Of a stretch of 64,000 nt of DNA, positions 25,801 through 64,000 are shown piece after piece; positions within the stretch are counted from its first letter, which is position 1, and each line of letters opens with the position of its first letter. A model generated the notes under the pieces. That model was not told where the DNA came from, did not search any database, and saw only the letters and a list, made by a program, of their open reading frames with translations. Made by a program: the position numbers and the translations under genes. The DNA lies in the NCBI GenBank assembly GCA_907165135.1, contig OU015568.1, positions 6,076,001-6,140,000 of the forward strand, in the 5' to 3' direction. The DNA comes from Oikopleura dioica (taxonomy: Eukaryota; Animalia; Chordata).

Positions 25801-28800
25801 CGATTCTAAGGATGGGAAAGACGATAAACAACCAGAATCCAAGAAGATAAATACGACTAAGAACGTTGAAGATTTCCAACCATTCGACGTTCACTTTTAC
25901 ACAGTGAAGAAGAAGCGACCAGGAAAGGCTTATTTCGCTTCGGCTACCATCATTACGGGCTCTAAAAGTTTTGACGTATCGATGGAAGTCGACAGCGGAG
26001 CCGAGTCCTCCTGTCTGTCCGCTGCTTACGTTCCCGACGAATTTCTCCAGATGCTGAAGCCCTGTCCCTTCAAGGTCACCGGTTTCAGCCCAAATATTCC
26101 CGCCGAGCAGCCGATGGGTATCCTTCCCTGCCGCTTATCATTCAATGGTGGCCCTGCGTTCTCCTTGAATCTCACCATCATGCCAGGCAGTAAATACCCA
26201 AGTCTACTGGGCCGCGATATACTAGAGAATGCGATGACGGACAGCTTCACAGTCGACAATAAGAATCGTACTCTCTCATTTTGCTACAACGAAGCCTTCA
26301 CACAAACTGAGACTCAAGTGGTGAAGCTGGACGGAGTGAAGCGGACCAAAATCAAGAAATACTTGACGACTAGATCAGCGGTCAAAGACAGCGATCGGTC
26401 CCGCACTCAACCACCACGAGAAGTCCCAAAGCTGGACGCGCCGAACAAGAACGCAGCCAGGTGCCCCATTCAGCTAGCGAAGCAAAAACTCGGAATAACC
26501 CTACCAGCAGACGCAGACCCGGGGCAAAAGAAGATGGTCGCCGAGCTGTGTTTGGAATTCGACGACAGATTCGGCTGCGACGGTCAAAAAATGGGTGAAT
26601 TCCCGTTCGAGATCGAAATCCCGACTGATGGTACGAGTCGAAACATCAGTCAACACCCGATTCCGCAAGCTTTTCATGGTCAGGTCAGCGATCACATCTC
26701 CGAACTGCTCGAAACGAAAATAATAGAAGAGATCAAAGACCAGAAAGGGTTTAACAGCCCGGTATTGCCTATTCCTAAGAAATCTGGGGAAATGCGCTTC
26801 TGCATCAACTACAAAAACAGCCTGAACAAATGCCTCTCCGACAAATCCGACCCTTACCATCTCCCAAGCATGGAGGATACGATCGCGAACATTGGACCGG
26901 GCAATAAGTTTTTCGCCACAGTTGATCTACGAAGTGGATATTGGCAGTGCCCTGTAAAGAAAAGCGACAGGTACAAGACTTCCTTCCAGTGGGGTGGGAA
27001 ATCTTACGCCTTCTGCAGACTACCATTCGGTTATCGATGCTCGGGGAATATATTCTCGCGCGTCGTAAACACAATTCTCGACTCAAGCCCCACCAGGAAA
27101 AAGATGCTTTCTTATATCGATGACATAGTGTGTTTTGGGAAGACTTTCAGCTGCTATTACAACACTCTCCGAAACCTATTCATCGCGCTCCGCAAGTTTA
27201 ACGCTAAACTCAAGGGCGAAAAGTGCTCTTTCCTACAATCCGAAGCTCACTTTTTGGGCCGAATCATCAACGAAGATGGAATCAAACCGGACCCTGCGCA
27301 AGTCTCCGCTCTTCGTCAGATGAAACCCCCACGCTCCCAAAAGGAGTTAGCTTCATTAATCGGGTCATTGAATTGGATCCGAGGTTTTCTAGAAACGAAA
27401 ATGGGCGAAGCTATTTCATCCGGTTGCTTCTCGAGCAGAATGAAGCCCATAAACGATGTTCGAAATTCGGCGAACGAAACAAATTGTTTCAAGTGGACCA
27501 AAGAAGCGGATTTGGCGCTCAAGGAAATTCAACGACGACTCTCCGAGACTCCAGTCATAAGTTTTCCTAACTTTGACGAGTCTTTTCATCTCTACACAGA
27601 CGCGAGCCTGTACGCAGCGGGTGGCGTCCTGCTACAAGAGTATGGCGGGAGAGTGCACCTAGTAAGCGCGATTTCCCACACCTTCAACAAAGCTGAAAGA
27701 AAATGGAACACTTCAGAAAAGGAAATGTTTAGCATTGTCTGGTGCTGCGAGCGACTGGAAAAGCTCCTGAAAGGTAGATTCTTTCAGATTCACACAGACC
27801 ACCGATCTTTGATCTTCCTACACAAAAAGAAGTTCAAGAATTCTAAAATAAGCCGATGGCAAAGCCGATTGGAAGAATTCGATTTTCACATTGTCTACAT
27901 CAAGGGATCAGAAAATCAATTCGCCGACTTTATGAGCCGCAGACCTGGCGAGGACGACAAATCACTTGGATACGACTCCGAGTTTCCCGTTGGTCGCGAG
28001 TACGAAATCGACAAGAATTCACCAGTACGTGTCTTCGTCCCTTTCTGGAACGAAAATCAGTTTCCGGAGAAAATCACTTTATCAGAGGTGAAGATACATA
28101 AGGTAAACGTCAAGGCTATCGCGGCGCCAATGGAGATTCCGTTGGTGTCAGCGAATTATAATAACATTCTGGACTATCAAAGGGAGGACTCTGCTCTGAG
28201 TGCAATCATCACTTTTCTGGAATCTGGTAAGGAGCCACTGGACATAAAATCGCTGGTGAAGGACTCCGACCACCGACAATCGTCTCTACTCAAGATGGAA
28301 AAAGCTCTGTTCCTGGATAACACTACCGGGTGCTTGATGTGTCAATTCAAATCTGGCGCGCGGGCGGTGGTACCGGAAGCGGTAAAAAGTCACTTTCTCT
28401 TTCTAGCTCACGACTTGTCCGGTCATCTGGGCGAGCCGCGGACTTTAGAGCGATTAGAGGACGTTTGGTGGCCTTCATTTCAAGACGATGTTTCTAACTA
28501 CGTCCACAGCTGCGTCCCTTGCCTACGCAGAAAAGGATCTGCTGGAACTCGTACCAAACCGCCACTTGGAACCCTTCGTCGTGGAAAAACAGCTGGCGAA
28601 TCGATTCAGATCGATTTCGCTTGTATGCCTCCCGCTGGCGGATTCAAGTATTATTTGGTGGTGGCGGACACTTTCTCTCGCTACACTTGGTGCATTCCGA
28701 CACGGTCCGACACTGCTATCTGCGCCGCAAAAGCGCTCATCTACAAGGTCTTCCTTCCCATGGATTTCTTGCCGAAACATCTACACAGTGACAGAGGTAC

Positions 28801-31196
28801 CCACTTCTGCGCAAGCGTGATTGACGAAATGTGTAAGCTTAACCAGATAAAACATACAATAAGTACCGCATTTCACCCTCAATCAAACGCTTTCGCAGAA
28901 AGAGCGAATCGGACTATCAAAAACAGTCTATTCTGCATGGTCAACTCATCTTCCGGTCGAAAAACTTGGGCCGACTGCGTTCCCCACGTGATGCGCGCGC
29001 TCAATAGTGTGAAAAACAAAAGCACGAAAATTTCACCGCGAGAAGTTTGGTTTGGCCGAAAAAGTACTTTCACCCACTCTACTGGCGCAGAAATGACAGC
29101 GGAAACACCTCAGGTGTTTGGTCTCAATGTGGGAGCTTTAGCGAAATCGGCGGAAGCCATTGTGAAAACTGCGATGGAAGCTGCTGACCGAGCCATGGAG
29201 CACAGGCTGAAAAACGAGCCTAAGCCGAGACCAATCCCCGCTGGCGCTGTCGTGTACATTAAGCGAGAAAACCTGACCGACGCTAAAAGCAAGAAGGAAC
29301 GCTGGGTAGGTCCCCTGAAAGCCGTTTCGAGCAACGACTGGGTCGTCATGGTCGAAGATAAAAAAGGACAACGTGATTTCATCCATCGAGAACACGTGGT
29401 TCACGCCGCAGAACGAAATCACGACTTACGCTGGATTGATTACTACGAGGCCGAGTACGTATTCCCACATTTAACCGAAATCGTTAAGTCGAAAGTCCCA
29501 CAAAAATCGCCTGTTCCTACTTCCAAACCGATGGAAAAGTCCGGGTCGAAGTCGCATGGGGGGAGGAAATCTTCTCAGGTCGCGTCGACTCCGATGGTTG
29601 CTATGGAAAAACCGCCAAGATCATCTCTATCACCTATTTTGGAAAGTAGACGCCGATTGGACATGGAAAATCTGGGAGATACAACCGCTACATCTATTTT
29701 GGACTCGTCGGTAGCTCCAGCCGAGCCGTCAGATCGCTGGTACTCTGGTGGTACTCTTTATGAAACTGCCGAGGACATGTCAGCTGATGCTACAGTGATT
29801 TCGGAGGTTGCTGCGCCCGACAATAGCCATATGTCAGTCGATAAACAAAATTCAACAGTAGTTGAGGGCTCAGCAACTGAAAACAGCAAGAAAAGAACCC
29901 GTCCAAAGTCTTCACCAGATCGTCAATACTCAGCCGGCGCCGATCCGAATGCGACTTTAACCGAAGTTGGAGCAGCTCATCTCCCGAAACATACAAAACG
30001 AGCACACCGTGAAACGAGGCCCGTCGAACCTCTAAACATCGGCACAAACTCGGGTCAGTCATACGACTAAGCGCAAGTACTGCCCCACTCAGGTCCCCTA
30101 TTCATCGACCGGGGCCTGAAAAGGTACGGAAATTATCACAGTTTACCGTCGCCGACGTATTTTGAGTTCTTCTACATGTGCAGCTACTCCTTCATGTCAT
30201 CACCGCTCGGACATCACGAAAACTTCGCATCTGATTCAAGCTTTTTCCCAAAAAAGGGTTTTTTAACGCGAATCAGACTGCCTCGACGTTTCGAACCTGC
30301 CATGTTACTCATCTTACGCTTATACTCCTGCAAAAATCACACACTTTGGCCTTAGAGGACGTTTCAGTCTCATGGGGGGTATTGGGATCTTAGATTCGTT
30401 AGACTCCCTCGTCCCCTAAGGTCACTTGCTTATCTAGATCGAGCTTTGCTCGGTCGCCGCCGTGTATTTCTCTTCATTCGGTAATTCACGCAGTTCGTGA
30501 ATTAACCTCTATTTTACTCCAGCTCGAAATACAGACGTCAAAGATACTTTACTCGTTTTCTTCACTCGTCCAGATATAGAGAGCAGGCAAACTACGCTAG
30601 AAGTGGGAGATTCAGCAGAAGCTAGGATCCCTTCACTCTTTAACTGGCTTTCAAAATATCAGTCTACCCCGCTAATATTGACCATTCAGGAGAAAATATT
30701 TTTTTAAAGCCTCTTTCCTATAACCAGCTTGACAGGCCAGATCTAAGATTTCCTTGTCGCGAATGAGCTCATATTTTAGATACTTCAAATCGTTATCGAC
30801 ATTTTGCAAGGCTTCGGAAAGCGTTTCCAAATTCACAACCGGGCGAAAAACCGTCTCCATCAAAAGCTGGACGCCTTCTTTTAGCGCTCCTCGTTTGATG
30901 CTCAGCGCAAAGATCGTCGCTTCCTGGTCTGTCTGGCAGTCGCAAATTCCACCGTTCATTTCCAAAAACTCTCTGACTTGCGTTCTCGAAGCAAAAGAAT
31001 CTAGGGTCGCTCCAAAGGCCATTTTCTCGTCCAAGTGGGCGACGCCGTTTGGAATATCGACTGTATTCCGTGCCCCAGCGCGCAGAATAATCGCAATTGT
31101 GCAGTAATTTCCGTGAAGAGCAGATCGAGAGTAGAGATTCACATCGGAAGCTTTTGCTGAAAGAATTCTGTTTTCTAGGGATGAAAATTTAACCAT
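22840..31196 (-). CDS. PMPCA: Mitochondrial processing peptidase alpha-like, copy 2, split by LTR element 1
   Basis: 5' exon 30718-31196 (RAGARN..GVAHLDEKMAF..NGGICDCQ) continues after the element as RGNTIGLKR, then WEAP..LGGGRSFESGGAGKGL. The 3' end is uncertain. Confidence 0.78.
24147..24402 (+). repeat. 5' LTR, copy 1
   Basis: TATTGGGATC...GATCCCTTCA; direct repeat of 30380-30635. Confidence 0.95.
24917..30070 (+). CDS. Gag-pol polyprotein (PR-RT-RH-IN), 1717 aa
   Basis: DSG protease, YIDD RT, DAS/TDH RNase H, HHCC (HDLSGH..CVPC) and DDE integrase in Ty3/gypsy order; single ORF. Confidence 0.97.
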   Translation: MAANKSLLETVTEIRSINDRVNYLEEQVRNDESLKPSLEPLITESRVKLEQLSTTLLTCELDQGKDSTNATMREEAWVATTWSRHVQDLPKLDAACNTSFNTFLGRADIYHRAYVRDRPSREQPFIAAVYSHFDLNIERSLGTEFLNCQDWKSAKALLEKSFAAKSHYLLKLSEVFDVEYDHSKPFAHYTANVLQKMNEAKQATLNSYRQEKSADAGVDEIFDIFSTMMLYLNLRKEEPDVFNAILPSLSKVYDINELCRLAQSTRQNRVDSATVSQHFNRNKNKKKKNAKRASNDSKDGKDDKQPESKKINTTKNVEDFQPFDVHFYTVKKKRPGKAYFASATIITGSKSFDVSMEVDSGAESSCLSAAYVPDEFLQMLKPCPFKVTGFSPNIPAEQPMGILPCRLSFNGGPAFSLNLTIMPGSKYPSLLGRDILENAMTDSFTVDNKNRTLSFCYNEAFTQTETQVVKLDGVKRTKIKKYLTTRSAVKDSDRSRTQPPREVPKLDAPNKNAARCPIQLAKQKLGITLPADADPGQKKMVAELCLEFDDRFGCDGQKMGEFPFEIEIPTDGTSRNISQHPIPQAFHGQVSDHISELLETKIIEEIKDQKGFNSPVLPIPKKSGEMRFCINYKNSLNKCLSDKSDPYHLPSMEDTIANIGPGNKFFATVDLRSGYWQCPVKKSDRYKTSFQWGGKSYAFCRLPFGYRCSGNIFSRVVNTILDSSPTRKKMLSYIDDIVCFGKTFSCYYNTLRNLFIALRKFNAKLKGEKCSFLQSEAHFLGRIINEDGIKPDPAQVSALRQMKPPRSQKELASLIGSLNWIRGFLETKMGEAISSGCFSSRMKPINDVRNSANETNCFKWTKEADLALKEIQRRLSETPVISFPNFDESFHLYTDASLYAAGGVLLQEYGGRVHLVSAISHTFNKAERKWNTSEKEMFSIVWCCERLEKLLKGRFFQIHTDHRSLIFLHKKKFKNSKISRWQSRLEEFDFHIVYIKGSENQFADFMSRRPGEDDKSLGYDSEFPVGREYEIDKNSPVRVFVPFWNENQFPEKITLSEVKIHKVNVKAIAAPMEIPLVSANYNNILDYQREDSALSAIITFLESGKEPLDIKSLVKDSDHRQSSLLKMEKALFLDNTTGCLMCQFKSGARAVVPEAVKSHFLFLAHDLSGHLGEPRTLERLEDVWWPSFQDDVSNYVHSCVPCLRRKGSAGTRTKPPLGTLRRGKTAGESIQIDFACMPPAGGFKYYLVVADTFSRYTWCIPTRSDTAICAAKALIYKVFLPMDFLPKHLHSDRGTHFCASVIDEMCKLNQIKHTISTAFHPQSNAFAERANRTIKNSLFCMVNSSSGRKTWADCVPHVMRALNSVKNKSTKISPREVWFGRKSTFTHSTGAEMTAETPQVFGLNVGALAKSAEAIVKTAMEAADRAMEHRLKNEPKPRPIPAGAVVYIKRENLTDAKSKKERWVGPLKAVSSNDWVVMVEDKKGQRDFIHREHVVHAAERNHDLRWIDYYEAEYVFPHLTEIVKSKVPQKSPVPTSKPMEKSGSKSHGGRKSSQVASTPMVAMEKPPRSSLSPILESRRRLDMENLGDTTATSILDSSVAPAEPSDRWYSGGTLYETAEDMSADATVISEVAAPDNSHMSVDKQNSTVVEGSATENSKKRTRPKSSPDRQYSAGADPNATLTEVGAAHLPKHTKRAHRETRPVEPLNIGTNSGQSYD
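30380..30635 (+). repeat. 3' LTR, copy 1
   Basis: Follows the PPT and is followed by TSD CTCT. Confidence 0.95.
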
Positions 31197-32751: not shown

Positions 32752-35700
32752 ATGGCGGCGAACAAATCACTGCTAGAAACCGTCACCGAAATAAGAAGCA
32801 TAAACGATCGAGTAAACTACCTCGAAGAACAAGTGCGAAATGACGAATCACTAAAGCCAAGCCTAGAGCCCTTGATCACAGAAAGCAGAGTAAAATTAGA
32901 ACAGCTCAGTACAACGCTTCTTACCTGCGAGCTCGATCAAGGAAAAGACTCTACGAATGCGACAATGAGAGAAGAAGCATGGGTGGCCACTACCTGGTCT
33001 CGTCACGTCCAAGACTTGCCGAAGCTGGACGCCGCATGCAACACATCTTTCAACACCTTCTTGGGCAGAGCCGACATTTATCACCGCGCCTACGTCCGCG
33101 ACAGACCTTCACGTGAACAGCCTTTCATCGCAGCAGTGTACAGCCACTTCGACTTGAACATCGAACGCTCACTTGGAACCGAATTTCTGAATTGTCAAGA
33201 CTGGAAATCGGCCAAGGCGCTGCTAGAGAAATCATTCGCCGCGAAGAGTCACTACTTACTGAAGCTAAGCGAAGTTTTCGACGTCGAATACGACCATTCG
33301 AAGCCGTTTGCACACTACACCGCCAACGTCTTGCAAAAGATGAACGAGGCGAAGCAAGCGACTTTGAACTCTTACCGACAAGAGAAGTCAGCCGACGCCG
33401 GGGTCGATGAAATATTTGACATATTCTCGACGATGATGCTGTACTTGAATCTTAGGAAAGAAGAACCAGACGTTTTCAACGCAATCCTTCCAAGCCTATC
33501 AAAAGTTTACGATATCAACGAACTCTGCCGTCTCGCCCAATCCACAAGACAGAATCGAGTTGACAGCGCGACCGTCTCCCAGCACTTCAACAGAAATAAG
33601 AACAAAAAGAAGAAGAATGCTAAGCGCGCCAGCAACGATTCTAAGGATGGGAAAGACGATAAACAACCAGAATCCAAGAAGATAAATACGACTAAGAACG
33701 TTGAAGATTTCCAACCATTCGACGTTCACTTTTACACAGTGAAGAAGAAGCGACCAGGAAAGGCTTATTTCGCTTCGGCTACCATCATTACGGGCTCTAA
33801 AAGTTTTGACGTATCGATGGAAGTCGACAGCGGAGCCGAGTCCTCCTGTCTGTCCGCTGCTTACGTTCCCGACGAATTTCTCCAGATGCTGAAGCCCTGT
33901 CCCTTCAAGGTCACCGGTTTCAGCCCAAATATTCCCGCCGAGCAGCCGATGGGTATCCTTCCCTGCCGCTTATCATTCAATGGTGGCCCTGCATTCTCCC
34001 TGAATCTCACCATTATGCCAGGCAGTAAATACCCAAGTCTACTGGGCCGCGATATACTAGAGAATGCGATGACGGACAGCTTCACAGTCGACAATAAGAA
34101 TCGTACTCTCTCATTTTGCTACAACGAAGCCTTCACACAAACTGAGACTCAAGTGGTGAAGCTGGACGGAGTGAAGCGGACCAAAATCAAGAAATACTTG
34201 ACTACTAGATCAGCGGTCAAGGATAGCGATCGATCCCGCACTCAACCGCCACCAAAAGTCCCAAAGCTGGACGCACCTAACAAGAACGCAGCCAGGTGCC
34301 CCATTCAGCTAGCGAAGCAAAAACTCGGAATTACCCTACCAGCAAACGCCGACCCGGGGCAAAAGAAGGTGGTCGCCGAGCTGTGTTTGGATTTCGACGA
34401 CAGATTCGGCTGCGACGGTCAAAAAATGGGTGAATTCCCATTCGAGATCGAAATCCCGACTGATGGTACGAGTCGAAACATCAGTCAACACCCTATTCCG
34501 CAAGCTTTTCATGGCCAGGTCACTGATCACATCTCCGAACTGCTCGATACGAAAATAATAGAAGAGATCAAGGACCAGAAAGGGTTTAATAGCCCCGTTC
34601 TGCCAATCCCTAAGAAATCTGGGGAAATGCGCTTCTGCATCAACTACAAGAACAGCTTGAACAAATGCCTCTCCGACAAATCCGACCCATATCATCTTCC
34701 GAGCATGGAGGATACGATCGCGAACATTGGACCGGGCAACAAGTATTTCGCCACAGTTGATTTGCGGAGCGGATATTGGCAGTGCCCTATTAAGAAAAGC
34801 GATAGGTATAAGACTTCCTTCCAGTGGGGTGGGAAATCTTACGCCTTCTGCAGATTACCTTTCGGTTATCGATGCTCGGGGAATATATTCTCGCGCGTCG
34901 TAAACACGATTCTCGACTCAAGCCCCACCAGGAAGAAGATGCTTTCTTATATCGATGACATAGTATGTTTTGGGAAGTCTTTCAGCTGCTATTACAACAC
35001 TCTCCGAAACCTATTCATCGCGCTCCGCAAGTTTAACGCTAAACTCAAGGGCGAAAAGTGCTCTTTCCTACAATCAGAAGCTCACTTTTTGGGCCGAATC
35101 ATCAACGAAGAAGGAATCAAACCGGACCCTGCGCAAGTCTCCGCCCTTCGTCAGATGAAACCCCCACGCTCCCAAAAGGAGTTAGCTTCATTAATCGGGT
35201 CATTGAATTGGATCCGAGGTTTTCTAGAAACAAAAATGGGCGAAGCTATTTCATCCGGTTGCTTCTCGAGCAGAATGAAACCCATAAACGATGTTCGAAA
35301 TTCGGCGAACGAAACAAATTGTTTCAAGTGGACCAAAGAAGCGGATTTGGCGCTCAAGGAAATTCAACGACGACTCTCCGAGACTCCTGTCATAAGCTTT
35401 CCTAACTTTGACGAGTCTTTTCACCTCTACACAGACGCGAGCCTGTACGCAGCGGGTGGTGTTCTGCTACAAGAGTATGGCGGGAGAGTGCACCTAGTAA
35501 GCGCGATTTCCCACACCTTCAACAAAGCTGAAAGAAAATGGAACACTTCAGAAAAGGAAATGTTTAGCATTGTCTGGTGCTGCGAGCGACTGGAAAAGCT
35601 CCTGAAAGGTAGATTCTTTCAGATTCACACAGACCACAGATCTTTGATCTTCCTACACAAAAAGAAGTTCAAGAATTCTAAAATAAGCCGATGGCAAAGC

Positions 35701-37905
35701 CGATTGGAAGAATTCGATTTTCACATTGTCTACATCAAGGGATCAGAAAATCAATTCGCCGATTTTATGAGCCGCAGACCTGGCGAGGACGACAAATCAC
35801 TTGGATACGACTCTGAGTTTCCCGTTGGTCGCGAGTACGAAATCGACAAGAATTCACCAGTACGTGTCTTCGTCCCTTTCTGGAACGAAAATCAGTTTCC
35901 GGAGAAAATCACTTTATCAGAGGTGAAGATACATAAGGTAAACGTCAAGGCTATCGCGGCGCCAATGGAGATTCCGTTGGTGTCAGCGAATTATAATAAC
36001 ATTCTGGACTATCAAAGGGAGGACTCTGCTCTGAGTGCAATCATCACTTTTCTGGAATCTGGTAAGGAGCCACTGGACATAAAATCGCTGGTGAAGGACT
36101 CCGACCACCGACAATCGTCTCTACTCAAGATGGAAAAAGCTCTGTTCCTGGATAACACTACCGGGTGCTTGATGTGTCAATTCAAATCTGGCGCGCGGGC
36201 GGTGGTACCGGAAGCGGTAAAAAGTCACTTTCTCTTTCTAGCTCACGACTTGTCCGGTCATCTGGGCGAGCCGCGGACTTTAGAGCGATTAGAGGACGTT
36301 TGGTGGCCTTCATTTCAAGACGATGTTTCTAACTACGTCCACAGCTGCGTCCCTTGCCTACGCAGAAAAGGATCTGCTGGAACTCGTACCAAACCGCCAC
36401 TTGGAACCCTTCGTCGTGGAAAAACAGCTGGCGAATCGATTCAGATCGATTTCGCTTGTATGCCTCCCGCTGGCGGATTCAAGTATTATTTGGTGGTGGC
36501 GGACACTTTCTCTCGCTACACTTGGTGCATTCCGACGCGGTCCGACACTGCTATCTGCGCTGCAAAAGCGCTCATCTACAAGGTCTTCCTTCCCATGGAT
36601 TTCTTGCCGAAACATCTACACAGTGACAGAGGTACCCACTTCTGCGCAAGCGTGATTGACGAAATGTGTAAGCTTAACCAGATAAAACATACAATAAGTA
36701 CCGCATTTCACCCTCAATCAAACGCTTTCGCAGAAAGAGCGAATCGGACTATCAAAAACAGTCTATTCTGCATGGTCAACTCATCTTCCGGTCGAAAAAC
36801 TTGGGCCGACTGCGTTCCCCACGTGATGCGCGCGCTCAATAGTGTGAAAAACAAAAGCACGAAAATTTCACCGCGAGAAGTTTGGTTTGGCCGAAAAAGT
36901 ACTTTCACCCACTCTACTGGCGCAGAAATGACAGCGGAAACACCTCAGGTGTTTGGTCTCAATGTTGGAGCTTTAGCGAAATCGGCGGAAGCCATTGTGA
37001 AAACTGCGATGGAAGCTGCTGACCGAGCCATGGAGCACAGGCTGAAAAACGAGCCTAAGCCGAGACCAATCCCCGCTGGCGCTGTCGTGTACATTAAGCG
37101 AGAAAACCTGACCGACGCTAAAAGCAAGAAGGAACGCTGGGTAGGTCCCCTGAAAGCCGTTTCGAGCAACGACTGGGTCGTCATGGTCGAAGATAAAAAA
37201 GGACAACGTGATTTCATCCATCGAGAACACGTGGTTCACGCCGCAGAACGAAATCACGACTTACGCTGGATTGATTACTACGAGGCCGAGTACGTATTCC
37301 CACATTTAACCGAAATCGTTAAGTCGAAAGTCCCACAAAAATCGCCTGTTCCTACTTCCAAACCGATGGAAAAGTCCGGGTCGAAGTCGCATGGGGGGAG
37401 GAAATCTTCTCAGGTCGCGTCGACTCCGATGGTTGCTATGGAAAAACCGCCAAGATCATCTCTATCACCTATTTTGGAAAGTAGACGCCGATTGGACATG
37501 GAAAATCTGGGAGATACAACCGCTACATCTATTTTGGACTCGTCGGTAGCTCCAGCCGAGCCGTCAGATCGCTGGTACTCTGGTGGTACTCTTTATGAAA
37601 CTGCCGAGGACATGTCAGCTGATGCTACAGTGATTTCGGAGGTTGCTGCGCCCGACAATAGCCATATGTCAGTCGATAAACAAAATTCAACAGTAGTTGA
37701 GGGCTCAGCAACTGAAAACAGCAAGAAAAGAACCCGTCCAAAGTCTTCACCAGATCGTCAATACTCAGCCGGCGCCGATCCGAATGCGACTTTAACCGAA
37801 GTTGGAGCAGCTCATCTCCCGAAACATACAAAACGAGCACACCGTGAAACGAGGCCCGTCGAACCTCTAAACATCGGCACAAACTCGGGTCAGTCATACG
37901 ACTAA
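32752..37905 (+). CDS. Gag-pol polyprotein, 1717 aa, copy 2
   Basis: Same motifs as copy 1; 11 amino-acid differences, all in the PR-RT linker and RT. Confidence 0.97.
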   Translation: MAANKSLLETVTEIRSINDRVNYLEEQVRNDESLKPSLEPLITESRVKLEQLSTTLLTCELDQGKDSTNATMREEAWVATTWSRHVQDLPKLDAACNTSFNTFLGRADIYHRAYVRDRPSREQPFIAAVYSHFDLNIERSLGTEFLNCQDWKSAKALLEKSFAAKSHYLLKLSEVFDVEYDHSKPFAHYTANVLQKMNEAKQATLNSYRQEKSADAGVDEIFDIFSTMMLYLNLRKEEPDVFNAILPSLSKVYDINELCRLAQSTRQNRVDSATVSQHFNRNKNKKKKNAKRASNDSKDGKDDKQPESKKINTTKNVEDFQPFDVHFYTVKKKRPGKAYFASATIITGSKSFDVSMEVDSGAESSCLSAAYVPDEFLQMLKPCPFKVTGFSPNIPAEQPMGILPCRLSFNGGPAFSLNLTIMPGSKYPSLLGRDILENAMTDSFTVDNKNRTLSFCYNEAFTQTETQVVKLDGVKRTKIKKYLTTRSAVKDSDRSRTQPPPKVPKLDAPNKNAARCPIQLAKQKLGITLPANADPGQKKVVAELCLDFDDRFGCDGQKMGEFPFEIEIPTDGTSRNISQHPIPQAFHGQVTDHISELLDTKIIEEIKDQKGFNSPVLPIPKKSGEMRFCINYKNSLNKCLSDKSDPYHLPSMEDTIANIGPGNKYFATVDLRSGYWQCPIKKSDRYKTSFQWGGKSYAFCRLPFGYRCSGNIFSRVVNTILDSSPTRKKMLSYIDDIVCFGKSFSCYYNTLRNLFIALRKFNAKLKGEKCSFLQSEAHFLGRIINEEGIKPDPAQVSALRQMKPPRSQKELASLIGSLNWIRGFLETKMGEAISSGCFSSRMKPINDVRNSANETNCFKWTKEADLALKEIQRRLSETPVISFPNFDESFHLYTDASLYAAGGVLLQEYGGRVHLVSAISHTFNKAERKWNTSEKEMFSIVWCCERLEKLLKGRFFQIHTDHRSLIFLHKKKFKNSKISRWQSRLEEFDFHIVYIKGSENQFADFMSRRPGEDDKSLGYDSEFPVGREYEIDKNSPVRVFVPFWNENQFPEKITLSEVKIHKVNVKAIAAPMEIPLVSANYNNILDYQREDSALSAIITFLESGKEPLDIKSLVKDSDHRQSSLLKMEKALFLDNTTGCLMCQFKSGARAVVPEAVKSHFLFLAHDLSGHLGEPRTLERLEDVWWPSFQDDVSNYVHSCVPCLRRKGSAGTRTKPPLGTLRRGKTAGESIQIDFACMPPAGGFKYYLVVADTFSRYTWCIPTRSDTAICAAKALIYKVFLPMDFLPKHLHSDRGTHFCASVIDEMCKLNQIKHTISTAFHPQSNAFAERANRTIKNSLFCMVNSSSGRKTWADCVPHVMRALNSVKNKSTKISPREVWFGRKSTFTHSTGAEMTAETPQVFGLNVGALAKSAEAIVKTAMEAADRAMEHRLKNEPKPRPIPAGAVVYIKRENLTDAKSKKERWVGPLKAVSSNDWVVMVEDKKGQRDFIHREHVVHAAERNHDLRWIDYYEAEYVFPHLTEIVKSKVPQKSPVPTSKPMEKSGSKSHGGRKSSQVASTPMVAMEKPPRSSLSPILESRRRLDMENLGDTTATSILDSSVAPAEPSDRWYSGGTLYETAEDMSADATVISEVAAPDNSHMSVDKQNSTVVEGSATENSKKRTRPKSSPDRQYSAGADPNATLTEVGAAHLPKHTKRAHRETRPVEPLNIGTNSGQSYD

Positions 37906-55154: not shown

Positions 55155-56075
55155 ATGGATCTGAACTACCGCGAATCGGACGAAGAAGTCGTCAAGATCG
55201 AGCCCAACTCTTCGATGAGCATGGACGGCCAAGACATGACATTCGGCCTCGGAACCGGCCTCGACCAGCTTCCCTTCGGAGCCATTCCCAGTCAACAAGC
55301 AGTCGCGCAGCCAGCACCCCGAACCCCAGCCAACCCTACTGGCGGCAAGAAAGTGTCTGGGCGAGTAGAACGAGCTGCCAGAATCGCGGAATTATTCGAC
55401 GCTGGATCTCCTCGAGTCCGACTTGACCACTTCGTCTACAAAGGTATTTAAAAAGCGGGTGAATGCGTCTCATTTTGACGGCATTCTTGAGCCGACCGAG
55501 ACATTGAAAATTAGTAAGAAGAGTAGCAAAAGTTGCGTAGATGAGTTTCATAATCGATCGGCTCAGGACTGCGCGATTCTTCCTTTTTTTGATGATGAAA
55601 ATGAAAAGGTGGGGCGGGTCGGCCCGCACGCAACAGAAACCGCACTCCGCGGCTTAAAACCATTGAATTAGTTTTTCGAATTGAAATGGCTCTATTCCTG
55701 CCCCTTTTTAATGAAAAAAAAAATGTTCTGAAGCGACAAAGTAGGCAGTCGTAGGCTCGGCAACCTGTGTAAAAACTGAGTCAGGTCCTGGATCGTAAAT
55801 GAAAAGCTTTTTAGAACCCTGACTCAGGTTTTCTGCACAGGTCGCCAAGCCCAGTCCGTCCGGGCTCACCCTCCCCATTATTTCGTTTTTCGATAAAATC
55901 GGTGACGAGCTTAGTTTTAAAGATAACTCAAAAGAAGTAAGCTAATGTTAAATTCAGTCGATGACAATCCGGTCTTCGACGCTGCTCGAGTCTTTCTGGA
56001 CGGCGAGTGTCAAAACCTTGTCTATTGCTGTGACCCGAAATGCGCCGAAAAACCCACCTTCAAACGATTTTTTAG
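55155..56075 (+). CDS. Constant 5' coding exons (55155-55443, 55958-56075) of a BED/C2H2-like zinc-finger gene
   Basis: MDLNYRESDEEVVKIEP..HFVYK-V|DDNPVFDAARVFLDGECQNLVYCCDPKCAEKPTFKRFF-AG|GCAAG; GC-type donor in phase 2, matching the phase of the downstream units. Confidence 0.75.
55754..55851. repeat. ~100-bp imperfect inverted repeat in intron
   Basis: GGCTCGGCAACCTGTGTAAAAACTGAGTCAGG / CCTGACTCAGGTTTTCTGCACAGGTCGCCAAGCC. Confidence 0.75.
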
Positions 56076-56079
56076 GCAA

Positions 56080-56097
56080 GGGTCACAATCATCCCGC
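56080..56097 (+). promoter_or_regulatory. Putative docking site for mutually exclusive splicing
   Basis: GGGTCACAATCATCCCGC; its reverse complement GCGGGATGATTGTGACCC matches the motif upstream of the array acceptors. Confidence 0.8.
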
Positions 56098-56461
56098 AAA
56101 AATCAGGTTTTTAAAACCGTTTTATTTTTATGTTTCTCCTTTATTACTAACCTCGTCGTTTTATTTCGAAAAAAGACAAAAAGAACAGATGATTTCATTA
56201 TTTTTATTTATCGAATTTTTTTATTCATTCAAATCACCGTGATTTTTTTAATTCAAAATTTGTGCTGGTAAACTCTTTCGCTTGTGCTGGCAAGTTTCTT
56301 TCATTTTTCGTGTTTCGAGCTTCGAAAAAGCTCCAAAAACGAAGAAGAAATTTACCAGTACAAGCAAAATCGAAGAGGAACCAGCTGAAATGCCAAAAAT
56401 CGAGCTTTGAGTCCATAATCGTTGAAAAAAAGGTCCATTTTTTTGTGGCCCTTTTGACCAG

Positions 56462-59400
56462 TGGTCTGCGAGATAAAACACCTCACAAGGGTAATTTTCT
56501 GCGACACCACGTCAATCGCCATTCACAGTTCAAAATTCAAGCCCTGGGATTTATTCAAAAAGGATTCTAGTGATCCTTCGGCAAGTGCATTCAAACGCGG
56601 CCCGGGGAACTTGTCCTCCCAGCGATTGTACCTTCATAAGTTCACGATGCTCACGCATCATACTCGCCACCATCAAGGGTCGGGATTGTCTGCTTTTCTG
56701 GCTCTGTCCTTTTTTCACGAGTATTGTGACCCTCCCTTACTGCCCCTTCAAGCCCGGCGCTGGCTTGTATAAAAAGCGCTACTATCTCAAAAACTATCTT
56801 CTCGCGGCGCATCACAACTGTAAACATCTCAAAATTAGATCGATCTGTAACAATTTCGAGTTGGGATTAGACTCGACTTCTTCCCTTTTTGTGACCCGGA
56901 TCAAGGGCGACCGATAGTTCGAAGTTGAAGCGGCATCACCAGAGAAACCATTTTTCGCAAATGGAGAAACTCTTAGGCCCGGCTTTGTTTTTCACTTTTC
57001 ATGATTGTGTCCCTTCGCTAAAGGGGCCAGGAATCCATGGCTCAGACTAAATTCGAAGCTGAGCACAACATTGAGGCTCGGCGAATGTACATTCATCGAG
57101 GGAGCATGCTCCGCCATCACAACCGGCAGCACTCGCTCGACAGTCAAATTAGACTCAGTGAGATTTTTCTAGGCCTGGGATTTTGAAGTAGGATGATTTT
57201 GATCCTTTCTAGTGGCTTTTCGAGCCCTCTGGCCAAATACTTTCACAAGAGGAACATGATCGGCCACCACAATTTCAATCATCACGGGCGAGAAATACTC
57301 GGATAGGGATTGACTTGATCTTTGTTTAATTTTGTGATCCTCCAAAGTGGGTTTTGTCAAACAACGCTCAGCAAAAGTAAAAAGTTCTCTTTTAAAAAAG
57401 GGAACTTTTTAATTCACCACGACAGAAATCATTTTCGAAAAGATCAAAAGATTCTTCGTAAATTGGCAGGAACGGGTTTTTCTAGTGGGCTTGGTTTTTT
57501 GTACTTTGTGATCCTTTGAAGTGGCTACGATCAGACAAAAAAAGATGATCAGCCAGAACAAGTTCCATTGCCACAAATGGATGTTTATGAAACACCACAA
57601 CAGAAACCACCTCCCGAAAATTTCAGAAACGGATTTTATGTGTTTTGTGACCCTAGATTAGAGGATATAGAGCAGACAATGTAGCGGCAATGACACTTAA
57701 AAAATCGACAATGCTCGGCCACCACCAGGCCAACCACCGATTTATATCCGGTAGAGCTACTGTGGCGAAGCCCAGACTCGTTTTGGGATTTCAGTTTTTT
57801 AGAAAGAACGTATAATTTATTGTGACCCGGAATCAGAGGATACCGAGCTGACAAAGTTTCAAAATTCATGTTTCGAAAAGCGACAATGCTTGCCCACCAC
57901 GAGTCCCATCACCGACTTGTTCCCGGGAGGGGTGTTGGGCGGCCCCGTTCGAATTTCGTTTTGGGATCGCAGTTTTTGATACAATGATTTTTTGATTGAA
58001 TCATATTTTTATTTGAAGCTTTATTCTTAGTTTACTTTGTGACCCAGAAGTAGAGGCTATAGAACTGACAGCAGTTCCATGTTGATCAAAAAGTCCTACA
58101 TGCTCAGCCACCACAAATGCAACCACCGATCTGTGCCCGGCAGGGCCACTGTGGCGAAAAGATTTGTTGTTTCGGGATTTCAGATCTTCGTATTCATTTC
58201 TTTTGAGTACTCGTTATCAATGAACTCTTCCAAGTTCAAATTGTGACCCAGAATTAGACCATATAGAACGCGCGGTAATAGACTGAAGCTCAGCAGGTGG
58301 GACATGGTCGGCCACCATGAGCGGAATCACTCGGAACACGCCGGACTCTCGAAAAAGCAAATCTTGATATGGGATTTCAGATTTCATATTCTTTTCTTTT
58401 TGTGACCCAAATTAGAGGATACAGAACTAACAACATAAAAATGATGCTCAAAAAGTCGAAAATGATCAGCCATCATCAATGTAATCACGGATCTGTCTAC
58501 GGATCTCGCTGGACTGTCGAGAAAACGGATTTACTCCCGTGTAACAATTTTAGGGTAGGGTGGGTTGCGTCATTTCAGCGCTGCGCTCCCGGTACAATAC
58601 CTACCACACCGCCCGCAGCAAGCGCCTTTCTCAAAAAGCGCCATCTCTATTGGATTTTACGCTCGCTGCGGGCAGTGTGGTAGGTATTGTACCGGGAGCG
58701 CAGCGCTGAAATGACGCAACCCACCCTACCCTAAAATTGTTACAAGGGAGTAGTTTTGGGATTGTTAAACCTTTTGAGCTTGTTTTCTGTGACTCTTAGA
58801 AAAGCGGACTTCAGAAAGAAATGTCTTACTTTCACAAAACTAAGATGATGGCCCATCATCGAAATCAGCACAAAGATAAAGTATCGGATTTCAAAATTTC
58901 TTGATCATCTTTTTCGTTGAGTATTTTTCTCATTATTTTGTGACTCTTTCAAAAGTGGATATCAAAAAGGACGGAAAAAAGGCAGCGTATATTTTCATAG
59001 ATTCACGATGATGCGGCATCATAACAATTGCCACGACAATAATAGTGGACTTAACTGGCTGGGAAAAAAACTCGTCGCGTCAGAAGTTTGGGATTAGGAA
59101 CTTTGAATTATTTTCATGTGAAATACATTTGAGCGTTTCTTTTTTGTGACTCTTGGAAAAGCGGATACGAGTCAAAGAAAAATATCTTATATCTCCACAA
59201 AATTGGTTTTACTGGACATCATAAATACCACCACAAGAAAGATAAATCGATTAAATCAGTTATGGGTTCGAATATTTTAAATGTTTTCTTTCCATGATAA
59301 ATTTTTGAATTATCATCAGAATCATTATTTTTCCGGGAGTTTTTTAAAATGAATTTGTGACTCAATCAAAGCGGATATCAGAAAAGGCCAGACCATTCGC

Positions 59401-62400
59401 AATTTTACATTCACAAATATCGAATGCTTCTGCATCACAAAAACCACACCAAGAATCAATCGGCGCCGACAGTTTCGGATTTTACTTGATAAATTTTTTT
59501 TTCAATAAGAAAACTCATTTTTGTGACTCTTGAAAAAGCGGTTATCGAGGCATGGAAAACGGCGTTTTCAAATTTTTGCTGCACAAAAAAACAATGCTTC
59601 GGCATCATAAAATTAACCACGATTATTTTTATTCGCCACCAGTGAGGGATTAGAGACGAGTGACCCTTTCGTAGCGGCTGTTCGATCGACCTTCGATCGA
59701 AATCGTCGAAAATTTTCATCCACAAGCAGAAAATGCTTGGCCACCACAAGAACAATCACACTTTCAAAAAAACAGGGGATCGCTTGGGTTGACCAACGAG
59801 GGATTGGTCGCAGAGAATATTTGTTTAAAAGTTTTAAATTGAGTAGAAGTCAGTATCAATCCTTTTCTGACTTGATTTGTGACTCTATTGAAGTGGATAT
59901 CAGAAAAAGATTCTTCGATCGAAATCATCGAAAATTATCATCCACAAACAGAAAATGATTTGCCACCATAAAAATCATCATACGCCGAAGAACTATCAAA
60001 GTAGTTTTCTTGCCCAAGAAGGGAATCGGGCGTAACATGATCAGTTGTCTTTCTCTTACCCTAGAATCAATGATAATTTATAAATCAACTCATACGTGAC
60101 CCTTGACCTAAGAGGGGCTCGATATATCAAGCCCGCGAAGGATAAAATGATGCGCCACCATGAAAACAATCATTTAAATTACAGTGATAGATTTCCATTT
60201 GCAGGAAGGGATGAATTTTCTTGTGACCTTCTTCAGTGGCTATCGAACGGACTGTAAATCGCTTAGTTTGAATCGTTATGCTATGCTTGCTCATAACAGC
60301 AGAAATCATAAGATTTCGACAAAACAAGTGCGGATTTTATGAAGAATTTTTAAAAAATTATATAATATATTGTGATCCGATAAGGGGCTATGACCCAACA
60401 ACCGCTTGCGGAATGAAAAAACATAATATGATGGGCCACCACAATCGTAATCACGGTAGAAAAATGGTTGAATTGAACATTGATTTCAAAGCAAAGGGAT
60501 TTTTATAGAATCTCATCATCTTTTCGTGATATATTGTGACTCTTGAAAGCGCGGTAGATACGAGTAGGCGTGGAACACCTGGTAGAAATCCTTATGTTCA
60601 AAAGCAGAAAATGTTGCTTCATCATAAGCACAAGCACGAAAGCATAAATGCTAATTGGAGAGTTCAAGTTCGGGATTATTTTTGTGACTCTTATAGAGGA
60701 ATTTACTACAAAGCAATTCATAAGTGTTCGATGATGCAGCATCACAGAAATAACCATTTGAAAATAAATGGCTGCTGCCATTCAGGCTTTCGGGTTTTAT
60801 AGCTTTTCAATTTTTTTCTGTGGTCTTTTTGTGACTCTTTCCAGAGGAATAGACAACAACAGAACACTCACAATTCACAAGAGTTCGATGCTAAAGCATC
60901 ACAGATGGAATCACGTGAAAGTTAACTCAGGCTTTTGGGGTTTTAAGATTTTCAAGAGGAGATTTTTTGTGGTGTTTTTGTGACTCTTGCTAGAGGAATC
61001 TTCGGCAGCGCGAAATTTACACTCAAGAAAAGTGCGATGCTACAGCATCACAGATGCAATCACGCGAAACTTAATTCAGGCTTTTTGGGGTTTAGGATTT
61101 TCCAAAGAAAGCGGTTTTCATCGAAGACAATCATTTTGGGTTTCATACCAGGTAGTTTTCCAAAGTGAAAGATTTTTTCTGTGGTCTTTTTGTGACTCTT
61201 TCAAGAGGAATTTGCAACAACAAAACTCTCTCAATTCACAAGAGTACGATGCTAAAGCATCACCGATGTAATCATGTGAAAGTAACTTCAGGCTTTTGGG
61301 GTTTATGATTTCTCGGAGTGGGCAATTTTTTCTGTGGTGTATTGCGACCCTTGCTAGAGGAATATTCAATCGTTCAATTCACAAATTTTCGATGATGCAG
61401 CATCACAATAATAATCATCACGGGAGAAATAAATCAGGTTTTCGGGTTTTAGGATTTTTTGAAATCTTTTTTTTATGATGTGACCCAGTACAGTCCCTAC
61501 ATTAGATCTTCGATTCACAAGGCAACAATGCTGAGGCATCATAAAGCTAATCATTCCTCCCAAAAAGCAGCGAGAGCTCAAACAGGAAAGCGGGATATTG
61601 TGATCTTTGGTAGAGGCTTCCAGCGTGGTTCCAGGGGAATCAATTCGATTCATAAATGCACTATGTTGAAGCATCATGGTTACAACCATGCGACAACAAA
61701 ATCAGGCCTTTTGGGTTTAGCTATTTCTTCTGAATTCGGGATATTGTGATCTTTGACAGTGGTTTTCAGCGTTCCAGCCATAAGAGGAAAACTTACATTC
61801 ACAAGCAGACGATGCTCAGTCATCATGACCGTGAGCACGGGAAAGCTTTGGAGAAAACACTTTTTAACTGAAATCATGATTTTCGTGACCCTTTTAAGTG
61901 GATTGACTAAGAGACGAGAGCATGAGCCTTTAGGTCCTCATCGAAAGTCGATGCTTAGACATTCTGACACTCATCACGGTACTAATTTTCAACGTAAAGG
62001 CGAGGATTTTTTGAAAATGACGAGACTTTTCGGCCCAATTTTAATAGACGGGATTCTTCGAGACTGAAATGATTGTGACCCAAATTTTTAGTGGAATGGA
62101 GCGCAGAAGAGCTTTCAATACTTTGAAGCCTCAACGCTCAAAGTTCTATCAGCACTCGGATAATAATCATGGCACTTATTATCGGTTCTTACGGGGCGTA
62201 GGAACGGGATTTAACTATTGTGACTCTTTTCAAAGCGGAATGAGGCCAAAAGGGCAATATAAAGCTGATAAAAGTAACATGGAAGTTCACAAGCGTAATT
62301 TCAATTCGCACTCGGACCATAACCACGGAACGAATATTGTTCAGTCCGAAATGTTTGCTAGATTAGAGCGGGATATGAAGAATTAATCTTTCCTTCTTAT

Positions 62401-64000
62401 TGTGGCCCTTTTTCAAAGTGGAATGAGACCCAATGGCACTACAATTCATACATCCGCTATGAGACAGCATCATAAGTGGAATCATTTTTCGAAATTGGAA
62501 AAAGGCTTTTGGGCTTTTATAATGAGATATTTTTGTGTACCCTTTCGAAAGCGGAATGAGACCGAGCGGAAAAGATATTCACAAGCACAACTTCAATTCG
62601 CACCATTTTCATAACCATGGAACGAATATGATGAAGTCCAAAGTATCCGGCAAATTAGAGCGGGATAGAATCTCAGTCTTGAAAAACACCATTTTCTTAC
62701 TCATATCATCTCATATTCATATCATCACTGTCTCCTGATTTCGATAAATCTCGATTGTGACCCCAACTAGTGGCTACGCGGGTGGTTATGAAAACCTTCA
62801 TAACAAGAAACTGAATTTCCACAAAAGAACTATGGTCACCCATCACAGGAATAATCATAAATCAGCCGGGGATTGTATTTGTGAAATTTTTGCGAGATGT
62901 TTTGTGACTCTGAAAGTCAATCTGCTTGCCGATTTATCCATAAGGGGAGCTTGAATCGACACCACAAAACTCATCATTTGTCGAAAGAATGGGAATTTAG
63001 ACTTGATTGTGACCCATTTGATAGTGGCATTTCTAAAAAAGAGATTTGCCTCAAGAAACAAATCTCGATTGAAAGTGAGAAAAAATATGGCTATTACATC
63101 CACAATAAATCTTTTGTTGGACATCATACCATCCATCATTTGCCAAAAAAAGAATAAAGTCGGGGTTGATTTTTCATTTTTTTTTATTTCGAGGTTGATT
63201 GTGATCCATTGTTAGCGGACTGCATTTCAGAAACAGAGCAATTTACAACAACAAAAAACAATTTTTGCAGCATCACAAAAAACACGGCCATTTTGAAAAA
63301 GGGATTGAAAGTAATTGTGACCTTGTAAAGTGGCGTGGACGTAAGAACAAAATCTAAAATAACCAAAAAACTTCACATGTCTTCGCATCACATCGCTCAT
63401 CATTCGCAAAATACAAGGAAAAAAGCAAAGGGATGAATTTTCAATTCATTGTGATCCTCTAAAGTTCCCCGTCGACTCAAAAACTAGACTTGCATCACTA
63501 CCGCCAGCATATGAAAAAAGTAATGACCAGAGCTCAGATGGGCGAGCTTCTCGGCCCGCGTCTGAAAGCTTTGATTCGCGAAGGGAAGGGGGATGAAATT
63601 GTATTTTGTTAAACGATTGTGGCCCTTTCTAGCGCTATTGATGTTCGATGTAAGAATCCAGCGATAAATGCGAAGCATACGCTCTCCCATCATGTCGCTA
63701 GTCACCTGAATATTCAAAAAATTGGAAAAGCCAACACGGCAATTTTGCTAGAAATTGTTCGAGCCTCTGAAGCGTATCAAGAGTTGGGATGGCTTTTTTC
63801 GCTATCTCTTGTTTTTTTAATTGCGGATTTGATTTTTAAAATTGTGATCCTTTGTCTAGTGGAGTTGATGTAAGAAAGAAAAACCCAATAATCCATCACC
63901 ATAGTTTCCTCTGCCATCACCTGATAAATCACCGTCGAGTTTATATCGCAAGAGGTACTAATGTCGAAACTTTGCGTTTTATGTTGCAAGGGAGGGATTA
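56462..64000 (+). CDS. Array of at least 45 candidate mutually exclusive exons, each encoding a His half of a zinc finger
   Basis: Unit = TTGTGAYYY, ~5-9 nt, AG | N GGN TAY.. (xGY..HKxxMxxHHxxNH..). First exon bases: 56462, 56586, 56753, 56906, 57024, 57213, 57348, 57522, 57662, 57837, 58054, 58258, 58416, 58805, 58956, 59162, 59372, 59539, 59675, 59894, 60113, 60237, 60385, 60550, 60697, 60845, 60994, 61206, 61358, 61494, 61614, 61760, 61899, 62092, 62236, 62419, 62552, 62771, 62917, 63025, 63216, 63331, 63465, 63633, 63860. Confidence 0.85.
58534..58750. mobile_element. 217-bp Tc1/mariner-type (Stowaway-like) MITE with TA TSD inside array exon 13
   Basis: TA|CTCCC..GGGAG|TA with ~85-bp near-perfect TIRs; removing it restores KTDLVLG, like sibling exons ending RLVLG and NFVLG. 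Confidence 0.92.

Follow-up and report, generated by a model that had tools for sequence, protein, structure and literature searches.

A probable docking-site and selector system for choice among 45 or more alternative exons in the chordate Oikopleura dioica

Large docking-site and selector systems have so far been a hallmark of arthropod Dscam1, and to our knowledge a system on such a scale is known only from arthropod Dscam. The docking site and selectors of Dscam1 exon 6 were reportedly first described by Graveley in 2005. In the Drosophila genes lola and mod(mdg4), a constant N-terminal part is combined with one of many alternative 3′ exons encoding zinc fingers. Dscam1 exon 6 of Drosophila and other arthropods employs a docking site and selector sequences (PMC3535345, PMC8791459, PMC7430681). 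The Drosophila genes PGRP-LC, CG42235 and Pip also have competing RNA pairings, in their 3′ variable regions; there, selectors precede the alternative 3′ cassettes, and pairing of a docking site with a selector activates the 3′ splice site close to it (PMC6191721). Vertebrates have competing structures that involve two exons, such as those of ATE1 (PMC7797038). The chordate cases of competing pairing found in our literature search were all of this two-exon kind, and in open papers and preprints we found no report of a docking site or of mutually exclusive splicing in Oikopleura.

We have studied a candidate system of this type in a 64-kb stretch of the genome of the tunicate Oikopleura dioica, referred to as the window. 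The features are listed in Table 1. The gene begins with two constant exons, the junction of which is present in RNA contigs of sister lineages (L001, L003 and L016). The last bases of exon 2 are TTTTTTAG, with GCAAGGGTCACAATCATCCCGC following in the intron; the first intron bases are GCAA at 56076, and the donor is therefore a GC (56076-56077). The proposed docking site begins 4 nt past this donor, as an earlier note on this DNA had observed, and its core GGGTCACAA occupies 56080-56088. Downstream lies a tandem array of units, each consisting of a selector, a spacing of 6-10 nt, an acceptor and a short exon. Our count gave 45 units inside the window, in agreement with the numbering used before, and the array runs on beyond the window end. 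Exon 2 encodes the Cys-rich half (..GECQNLVYCCDPKC..) and the units encode the His-rich half of one Cys/His module; in the phase of exon 2, nearly every unit reads (S/R)G...HKxxMLxHHxxNH. We consider it probable, with good confidence, that the one docking site pairs with one of the many selectors, and thereby chooses the alternative exon.

Table 1. Positions of the features of the locus within the window
Feature	Position	Strand	Remarks
Constant exon 1	55157..55443	+	ATG at 55157; open reading frame and RNA contigs
Constant exon 2	55958..56075	+	Cys-rich half (..LDGECQNLVYCCDPKCAEKPTFKRFF); final AG is 2 nt of a codon
Selector-like copy CTGTGACCC in exon 2	56028..56036	+	Codons Cys-Cys-Asp-Pro
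GC donor and conserved 40-nt intron start	56076..56115	+	Five-lineage comparison
Putative docking site GGGTCACAATCATCCCGC	56080..56097	+	18 nt; only - strand TTGTGAYYY match in 64 kb
TACTAACC, perfect branch-point consensus	56145..56152	+	Invariant in five lineages
Long hairpin between docking site and first unit	56258..56391	+	-55.5 kcal/mol, z -6.9
Array of 45 units	56443..63868	+	Median spacing 154 nt; continues past window edge
Unit 3 selector	56724..56742	+	Acceptor ends CTG, not AG (56733-56743); exon from 56743
Unit 31 selector AGCGGGATATTGTGATCT	61589..61606	+	GGGAT and TTGTGA halves contiguous; -31.6 kcal/mol
Unit 34 selector ATGATTGTGACCC	62069..62081	+	13-nt perfect docking-site complement

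The arrangement shares several features with Dscam1 exon 6. Past a constant exon, the intron contains a single docking site, the one antisense copy of the selector motif in 64 kb; the alternative exons are homologous and form a large tandem array, each of them has a selector in front (45 of 45 units), and all of the selectors would compete for the same docking bases. As in Dscam1, conservation within the intron is highest at the docking site, and docking site and selectors are conserved in related genomes, here in five lineages. However, the gene, the sequences and the phylum are different. In Oikopleura the helix would abut both splice sites, at 4 nt from the donor on one side and 6-10 nt from the acceptor on the other, the selectors take up the space where a branch point and pyrimidine tract would usually be, the predicted helix becomes longer along the array, and one used acceptor lacks AG; moreover, where the exon 6 variants of Dscam1 are internal cassettes, the Oikopleura exons are perhaps terminal pieces. 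Since the gene is unrelated to Dscam, an independent origin is the simplest reading. The proposal of an independently evolved chordate version of docking and selection is thus supported by the unique complementarity, by conservation and by the splicing of the donor to three acceptors. The arrangement of selectors 5′ of alternative 3′ exons recalls PGRP-LC, which has about three alternatives against 45 or more in Oikopleura. ATE1 provides another chordate example in which intronic elements compete for pairing and so decide between homologous exons, but cases of that type comprise two exons and long-range helper helices, and lack a large array that depends on one docking site.

The selector motif TTGTGAYYY is strongly concentrated in the array. 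The window contains 34 matches, against 5.6 (sd 2.4) expected, and none of 100 shuffles reaches 34. Within the array there are 32 matches between 56724 and 63850, all of them on the + strand and each ending 6-10 nt upstream of an alternative acceptor, while the sole - strand match in the 64 kb is the docking site. When near variants are included, the motif stands close to the acceptor in all 45 units, so the earlier statement that nearly all units carry it is borne out. From the end of the selector to the start of the exon the distance is 7 nt in 18 units, 8 nt in nine, 9 nt in eight, 10 nt in seven and 6 nt in three. Outside arrays we counted 3 matches in 183 kb of strand, made up of the rest of the window together with the parts of two further O. 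dioica loci (L017 and L019) that lie outside the array. The density is thus 0.016 per kb outside arrays compared with 4.05 per kb (32 in 7.9 kb) within the array, a difference of about 250-fold; the earlier note had not seen the motif in ordinary introns of the window. In these 183 kb of strand it does not precede ordinary acceptors in the manner of a common branch-point or pyrimidine-tract motif, and this rarity indicates that it is not a general branch-point signal.

The units have diverged considerably. Tandem Repeats Finder, run on 55-64 kb, reported no repeats, because the units are too dissimilar; subfamilies can be recognized, neighboring units sharing selector variants such as CTC. Unit 8 (57506-57645) is seemingly frameshifted: the usual acceptor at 57522 gives SGY, after which the His motif is lost, and only an AG lying 13 nt beyond 57522 brings the motif into frame. 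In the tail of unit 13 there is a perfect inverted repeat of roughly 200 bp (58538-58745), a MITE-like insertion that puts the next selector 387 nt away.

The strength of the potential pairing was calculated by folding the sequence 56076-56100 against positions -40 to -1 of each acceptor. The predicted duplexes with the 45 acceptors have a mean energy of -20.9 kcal/mol. By comparison, 3000 other AG sites in the window gave a mean of -9.6 kcal/mol (sd 3.3), and shuffled docking sites gave -8.8 kcal/mol (sd 1.26). More than half of the units (28 of 45) lie beyond the first percentile of the control AG sites, and unit 31 forms the strongest predicted duplex in the window.

We also scored the nine positions of the core individually in the 45 units. 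Of these 405 cells 392 are paired, comprising 362 Watson-Crick pairs and 30 G-U wobbles, with 13 mismatches; thus 30 of the 43 departures from consensus are compatible with wobble, though the units are related by duplication and the counts overstate the number of independent events. The earlier note had held that most variation fits wobble pairing, with GGC in units 1, 36 and 44, and both points stand. Its list of mismatched units (5, 6, 29 and 37) is correct for internal mismatches; units 2, 14, 19, 21, 30 and 33, in which the mismatch falls on one of the first two positions, are not in it. The perfect 13-nt complement that it had placed before unit 34 is present.

The predicted helix lengthens along the array. 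Proximal units have selectors of 9 bp, and distal selectors extend along the next docking bases as GATTGTGACCC, ATGATTGTGACCC or once GGGATGATTGTGACTC; in distal units the match with the docking site spans 11-16 nt. In units 31 and 32, and at position 1550 of L014, the GGGAT and TTGTGA halves are contiguous and the match reaches 15-16 nt. The length of the uninterrupted helix correlates with position in the array in three lineages, with rho = 0.45 (p = 0.002), 0.54 (p = 0.05) and 0.52 (p = 0.01), and in the window the duplex energy correlates with distance (rho = -0.48, p = 0.0009); since the units are related by duplication, these rank correlations are overstated and the p-values generous. 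The added distal bases track the docking sequence, which would not be predicted if the motif were a branch point or a protein-binding site.

To examine conservation we used exons 1 and 2 as queries, and obtained contigs of several other O. dioica lineages in which exon 1 is about 64-77% identical. Within the first 40 nt of the intron, only 2 of 40 columns are variable among five lineages, both of them in a single lineage, and the sole change in the docking core is a C to T opposite G. By comparison, 10 of the 39 third codon positions of exon 2 vary, and none of the first or second positions. The remainder of the intron can barely be aligned, save for the TACTAACC box and the region of the hairpin. 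The selectors are also retained, with a core that is almost always TTGTGACCC in L001, L002, L012 and L014, and they lie 7-11 nt from the acceptor in the other lineages. Compensatory changes in orthologues had been suggested as a check on the pairing. None was found among these lineages, the changes being one-sided and compatible with wobble; because the docking site is almost invariant, this result is uninformative rather than contrary.

Two further structures were noted near the docking site. The selector-like sequence CTGTGACCC of exon 2 can pair with the docking site 43 nt downstream, and a local hairpin formed in this way appears in the minimum-energy fold. We considered it as a possible special structure and rejected it, as it is predicted but not exceptional (z only -1.3); in the Bergen-type lineage the exon carries the synonymous CTGCGACCC instead. 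The long hairpin at 56258-56391 has a counterpart at the same place, with different arm sequences, in three of four other lineages. A search of this intron hairpin against Rfam gave nothing above threshold, with sub-threshold matches that were all miRNA-like. There is also a short inverted repeat (55760-55845, MITE-like) within intron 1 of the gene.

Is the constant donor joined to acceptors that follow selectors? The transcripts available are assembled metatranscriptome contigs of sister lineages, in which three acceptors are represented. The donor of exon 2 is joined to the orthologue of window unit 3 in L001, to a distal unit in L014, and to the last unit of a Bergen-type array in L016, and wherever genomic sequence exists the used acceptor lies 7-8 nt past the selector. 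In L003/L015 intron 1 has been removed and the docking intron retained. Evidently the constant donor is used with several acceptors in sister lineages, each just 3′ of a selector.

The junction in L001 is of an unusual kind. Comparison with the unspliced L013 of the same lineage reveals a 696-nt intron, from AG/GCAAGG to ...TTGTGACCCTGAAATG/CCCC (the solidus marks the junction). The acceptor, ...CCCTGAAATG/CCCC, is thus without AG and lies 7 nt past the selector of the unit 3 orthologue. The corresponding place is CTG in the window, where the reading frame requires the same junction, and CG in L012. Among the 45 units the acceptor trinucleotide is AAG in 22, TAG in 16, CAG in six and CTG in one. 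CAG is normally the preferred acceptor, and the prevalence of weak acceptors fits sites that need help. A DNA rearrangement signal, which was considered as a separate possibility, was rejected: the junctions are splice junctions, and unspliced RNA exists.

The mechanism that we propose is as follows. In the pre-mRNA, the 18-nt docking site close to the exon 2 donor would base-pair with one selector, which may be TTGTGAYYY or as long as GGGATGATTGTGAC in distal units; between its end and the 3′ splice site lie 6-10 nt. Such a helix would loop out the intervening units and set the chosen weak acceptor beside the only donor, and in each transcript exon 2 would be joined to one alternative exon, providing the His-rich half. 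We infer that the pairing causes the choice and that one unit is chosen per transcript; a single docking site would by itself limit each transcript to one alternative exon. The longer distal helices would offset the effects of distance and of later transcription. The selectors occupy the place usual for the branch point and pyrimidine tract, and a stable helix there could hinder U2 and U2AF. We suppose that after the choice the helix would be reopened for the spliceosome (U2).

Other readings of the motif must be weighed. TTGTGAYYY might combine a branch point, its A being that of GTGAC at 10-13 nt from the exon, with the start of a pyrimidine tract, both copied by tandem duplication, and the complement next to the donor would then have no part in selection. 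The spacing from the A to the acceptor is indeed similar to that of CTAAT in intron 1 of the same gene, the array is almost free of CTAAY that might serve as separate branch points, and YYY varies among pyrimidines only, a pattern equally expected of a pyrimidine tract. Yet the motif is some 250 times rarer outside arrays, its A has been replaced by G in three units and by T in two, and the distal matches of 11-16 nt extend well past any branch-point motif. The antisense copy is unique, lies 4 nt from the donor and is conserved above the level of synonymous sites. We therefore regard the reading as improbable in this exclusive form. It can be compatible with choice by pairing if the selector doubles as the branch site, and the selector probably does overlap the branch region of its unit, with its A at 10-13 nt from the exon. 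A splicing protein might instead bind UUGUGAYYY, with the antisense copy being coincidental or having a separate role, and this would agree with a short motif at a fixed position relative to the acceptor. It is hardly credible, however, since it leaves unexplained why a perfect antisense copy should lie 4 nt from the donor, why that copy has been conserved in five lineages, and why selector extensions follow the docking sequence base by base.

The pairing could also be real but inhibitory, the docking site masking the branch region of one unit at a time, or being held by the exon 2 copy, while other factors make the choice. The selectors do overlap the expected branch and pyrimidine region, and CTGTGACCC, 43 nt upstream of the docking site, forms a hairpin with it in the minimum-energy fold. 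But masking one among 45 or more units would hardly alter the outcome, the acceptors used in RNA directly follow selectors, and the longer distal helices agree with activation; furthermore, the local hairpin has a z of -1.3 and its exon arm is altered in one lineage. We find this highly improbable. Finally, the repeats might have no function, and be alike merely from recent duplication of the array, as the variants shared within subfamilies of neighboring units might suggest. To this we give almost no credence: the exons and spacers have diverged beyond detection by Tandem Repeats Finder while the selector core has been kept, the core persists in orthologous arrays whose spacers cannot be aligned, and equal conservation is not seen across the rest of the unit. 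Choice of the exon by pairing of the docking site with a selector is thus the reading that we prefer.

Within this preferred reading, the location of the branch point raises a further possibility. The perfect branch-point consensus TACTAACC, about 70 nt into the intron, is preserved in surroundings that have diverged, and the first AG beyond it is 21-70 nt away and is conserved neither in position nor in kind. The array contains only about six CTAAY. All of the alternative acceptors might share TACTAACC as one branch point, the helix delivering the distant 3′ splice site to it. This would explain the conserved branch consensus lacking a conserved acceptor after it, the near-absence of CTAAY in the units, the fixed spacing of 6-10 nt between selector and acceptor, and the use of a TG/CG acceptor. 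If it were true, the acceptors would have no branch point or pyrimidine tract of their own, would usually be weak (AAG or TAG) and in one case without AG, and RNA pairing would make the choice at the 3′-site step, bridging 0.4 to more than 8 kb. We think it unlikely that a single branch point serves the whole array.

An independently evolved system with 45 alternatives, if true, would show convergence. As a laboratory chordate, O. dioica is small, breeds fast and has a tiny genome, and with units of about 150 nt and helices abutting both splice sites the locus would provide a compact test bed. Questions that could be addressed are how a helix activates a splice site, how a bias due to distance is balanced, and whether a 3′ splice site can be set by geometry and not by AG.

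The pentanucleotide GGGAT is a second recurrent element of the units. The + strand of the array contains 29 copies of it and no ATCCC, and the - strand has no copy. It had been noted as often lying further upstream of the selector, and an exact copy is in fact present within 110 nt 5′ of the selector in 27 of 45 units. We considered GGGAT as the 5′ half of the selector and rejected this, as only a 5-bp core fits the ATCCC of the docking site. Pairing with the docking site would require GGGATGA, whereas the units have the consensus GGGATTT, 58 of 87 copies having T at +5. Duplexes of GGGAT with the 3′ half of the docking site, at -10.9 kcal/mol, are no stronger than those with random flanks around ATCCC (-11.35 kcal/mol, sd 0.81). 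An extension of the docking pairing through GGGAT and ATCCC is thus poorly supported. GGGAT as part of a donor in fixed phase was also rejected: the nearest upstream G[TC] is in phase 0, 1 and 2 in 41, 22 and 5 units respectively, and is not constant. This distribution is not uniform, and could also be produced by coding descent.

A Pfam search of the spliced protein P0008 identified no domain, and the paralogues P0014 and P0016 likewise gave none. The latter are distant homologues in which the Cys/His module is unsplit; P0014 (CBY13542.1) and P0018 are O. dioica proteins present in NCBI and UniProt. Whole finger domains are swapped in lola and mod(mdg4), partly by trans-splicing, whereas the Oikopleura gene divides one Cys/His module between exons, keeping the Cys half constant and varying the His half. 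This points to a protein family in which the His-rich half of a metal-binding module is diversified by splicing.

What follows the chosen exon bears on whether it is a terminal piece or a cassette. The open reading frames of the units remain open as far as GGGAT in about 95% of units, and reach a stop usually 4-70 nt past it, with a few reading into the next unit; in PGRP-LC-type genes too, the alternative 3′ cassettes each end the frame. The RNA contigs are also like the PGRP-LC type in lacking splicing downstream of the chosen unit: past the chosen or last unit, L001, L014, L016, L018 and L020 remain colinear with the genome. Unlike that type, in which each cassette has its own 3′-end formation, the units lack poly(A) signals of their own (four AATAAA and one ATTAAA in 7.9 kb for 45 units). 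The RNA instead runs on through up to 15 later units and into a downstream paralogous coding region. L016 is unspliced from the last unit into the P0018-like coding region and on to a poly(A) signal, the small introns of the paralogue having been removed, judged against the Bergen gene structure.

Database proteins joining exons 1-2 to the downstream region were not found. Nor were mRNAs joining an alternative exon to it found, which is weak evidence since assemblies of many low-coverage isoforms favor the unspliced path. The colinear contigs and the absence of joined proteins favor alternative last coding pieces. Against this, in-frame conservation of the downstream coding region reaches back about 70 codons 5′ of its first ATG, with indels of 12 and 63 nt and differences of 6, 6 and 15 by codon position; the conservation extends to a conserved AAAAG/, which is preceded by a stop. 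This conserved coding sequence 5′ of the ATG, the putative G[TC] sites before GGGAT that are mostly in phase 0 or 1, and the unit frames that stay open as far as GGGAT argue against terminal pieces. We lean slightly towards the chosen exons being terminal coding pieces over cassettes.

At 158-195 in L018, at 60-100 in L020 and just upstream of 10001 in L019, the downstream paralogue with its unsplit Cys/His module is preceded by a block that is identical in three lineages (..GTCAAATCCCATACCAAAGCC..) and contains AAATCCC, the complement of the unit consensus GGGATTT; conservation of the coding type begins there 5′ of any ATG. Pairing of GGGAT with the conserved AAATCCC downstream of the array in the other lineages is calculated at -11.6 kcal/mol, no better than random flanks. 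The Bergen scaffold FN653195 (L017) has a fragment of the paralogue and no array, a gap that is probably an artefact of assembly or haplotype.

Elsewhere in the window, two open reading frames of 1717 aa (24917-30070 and 32752-37905) are 99% identical and have reverse transcriptase, RNase H and integrase domains. They are young copies of one LTR retrotransposon of the Ty3/gypsy type.
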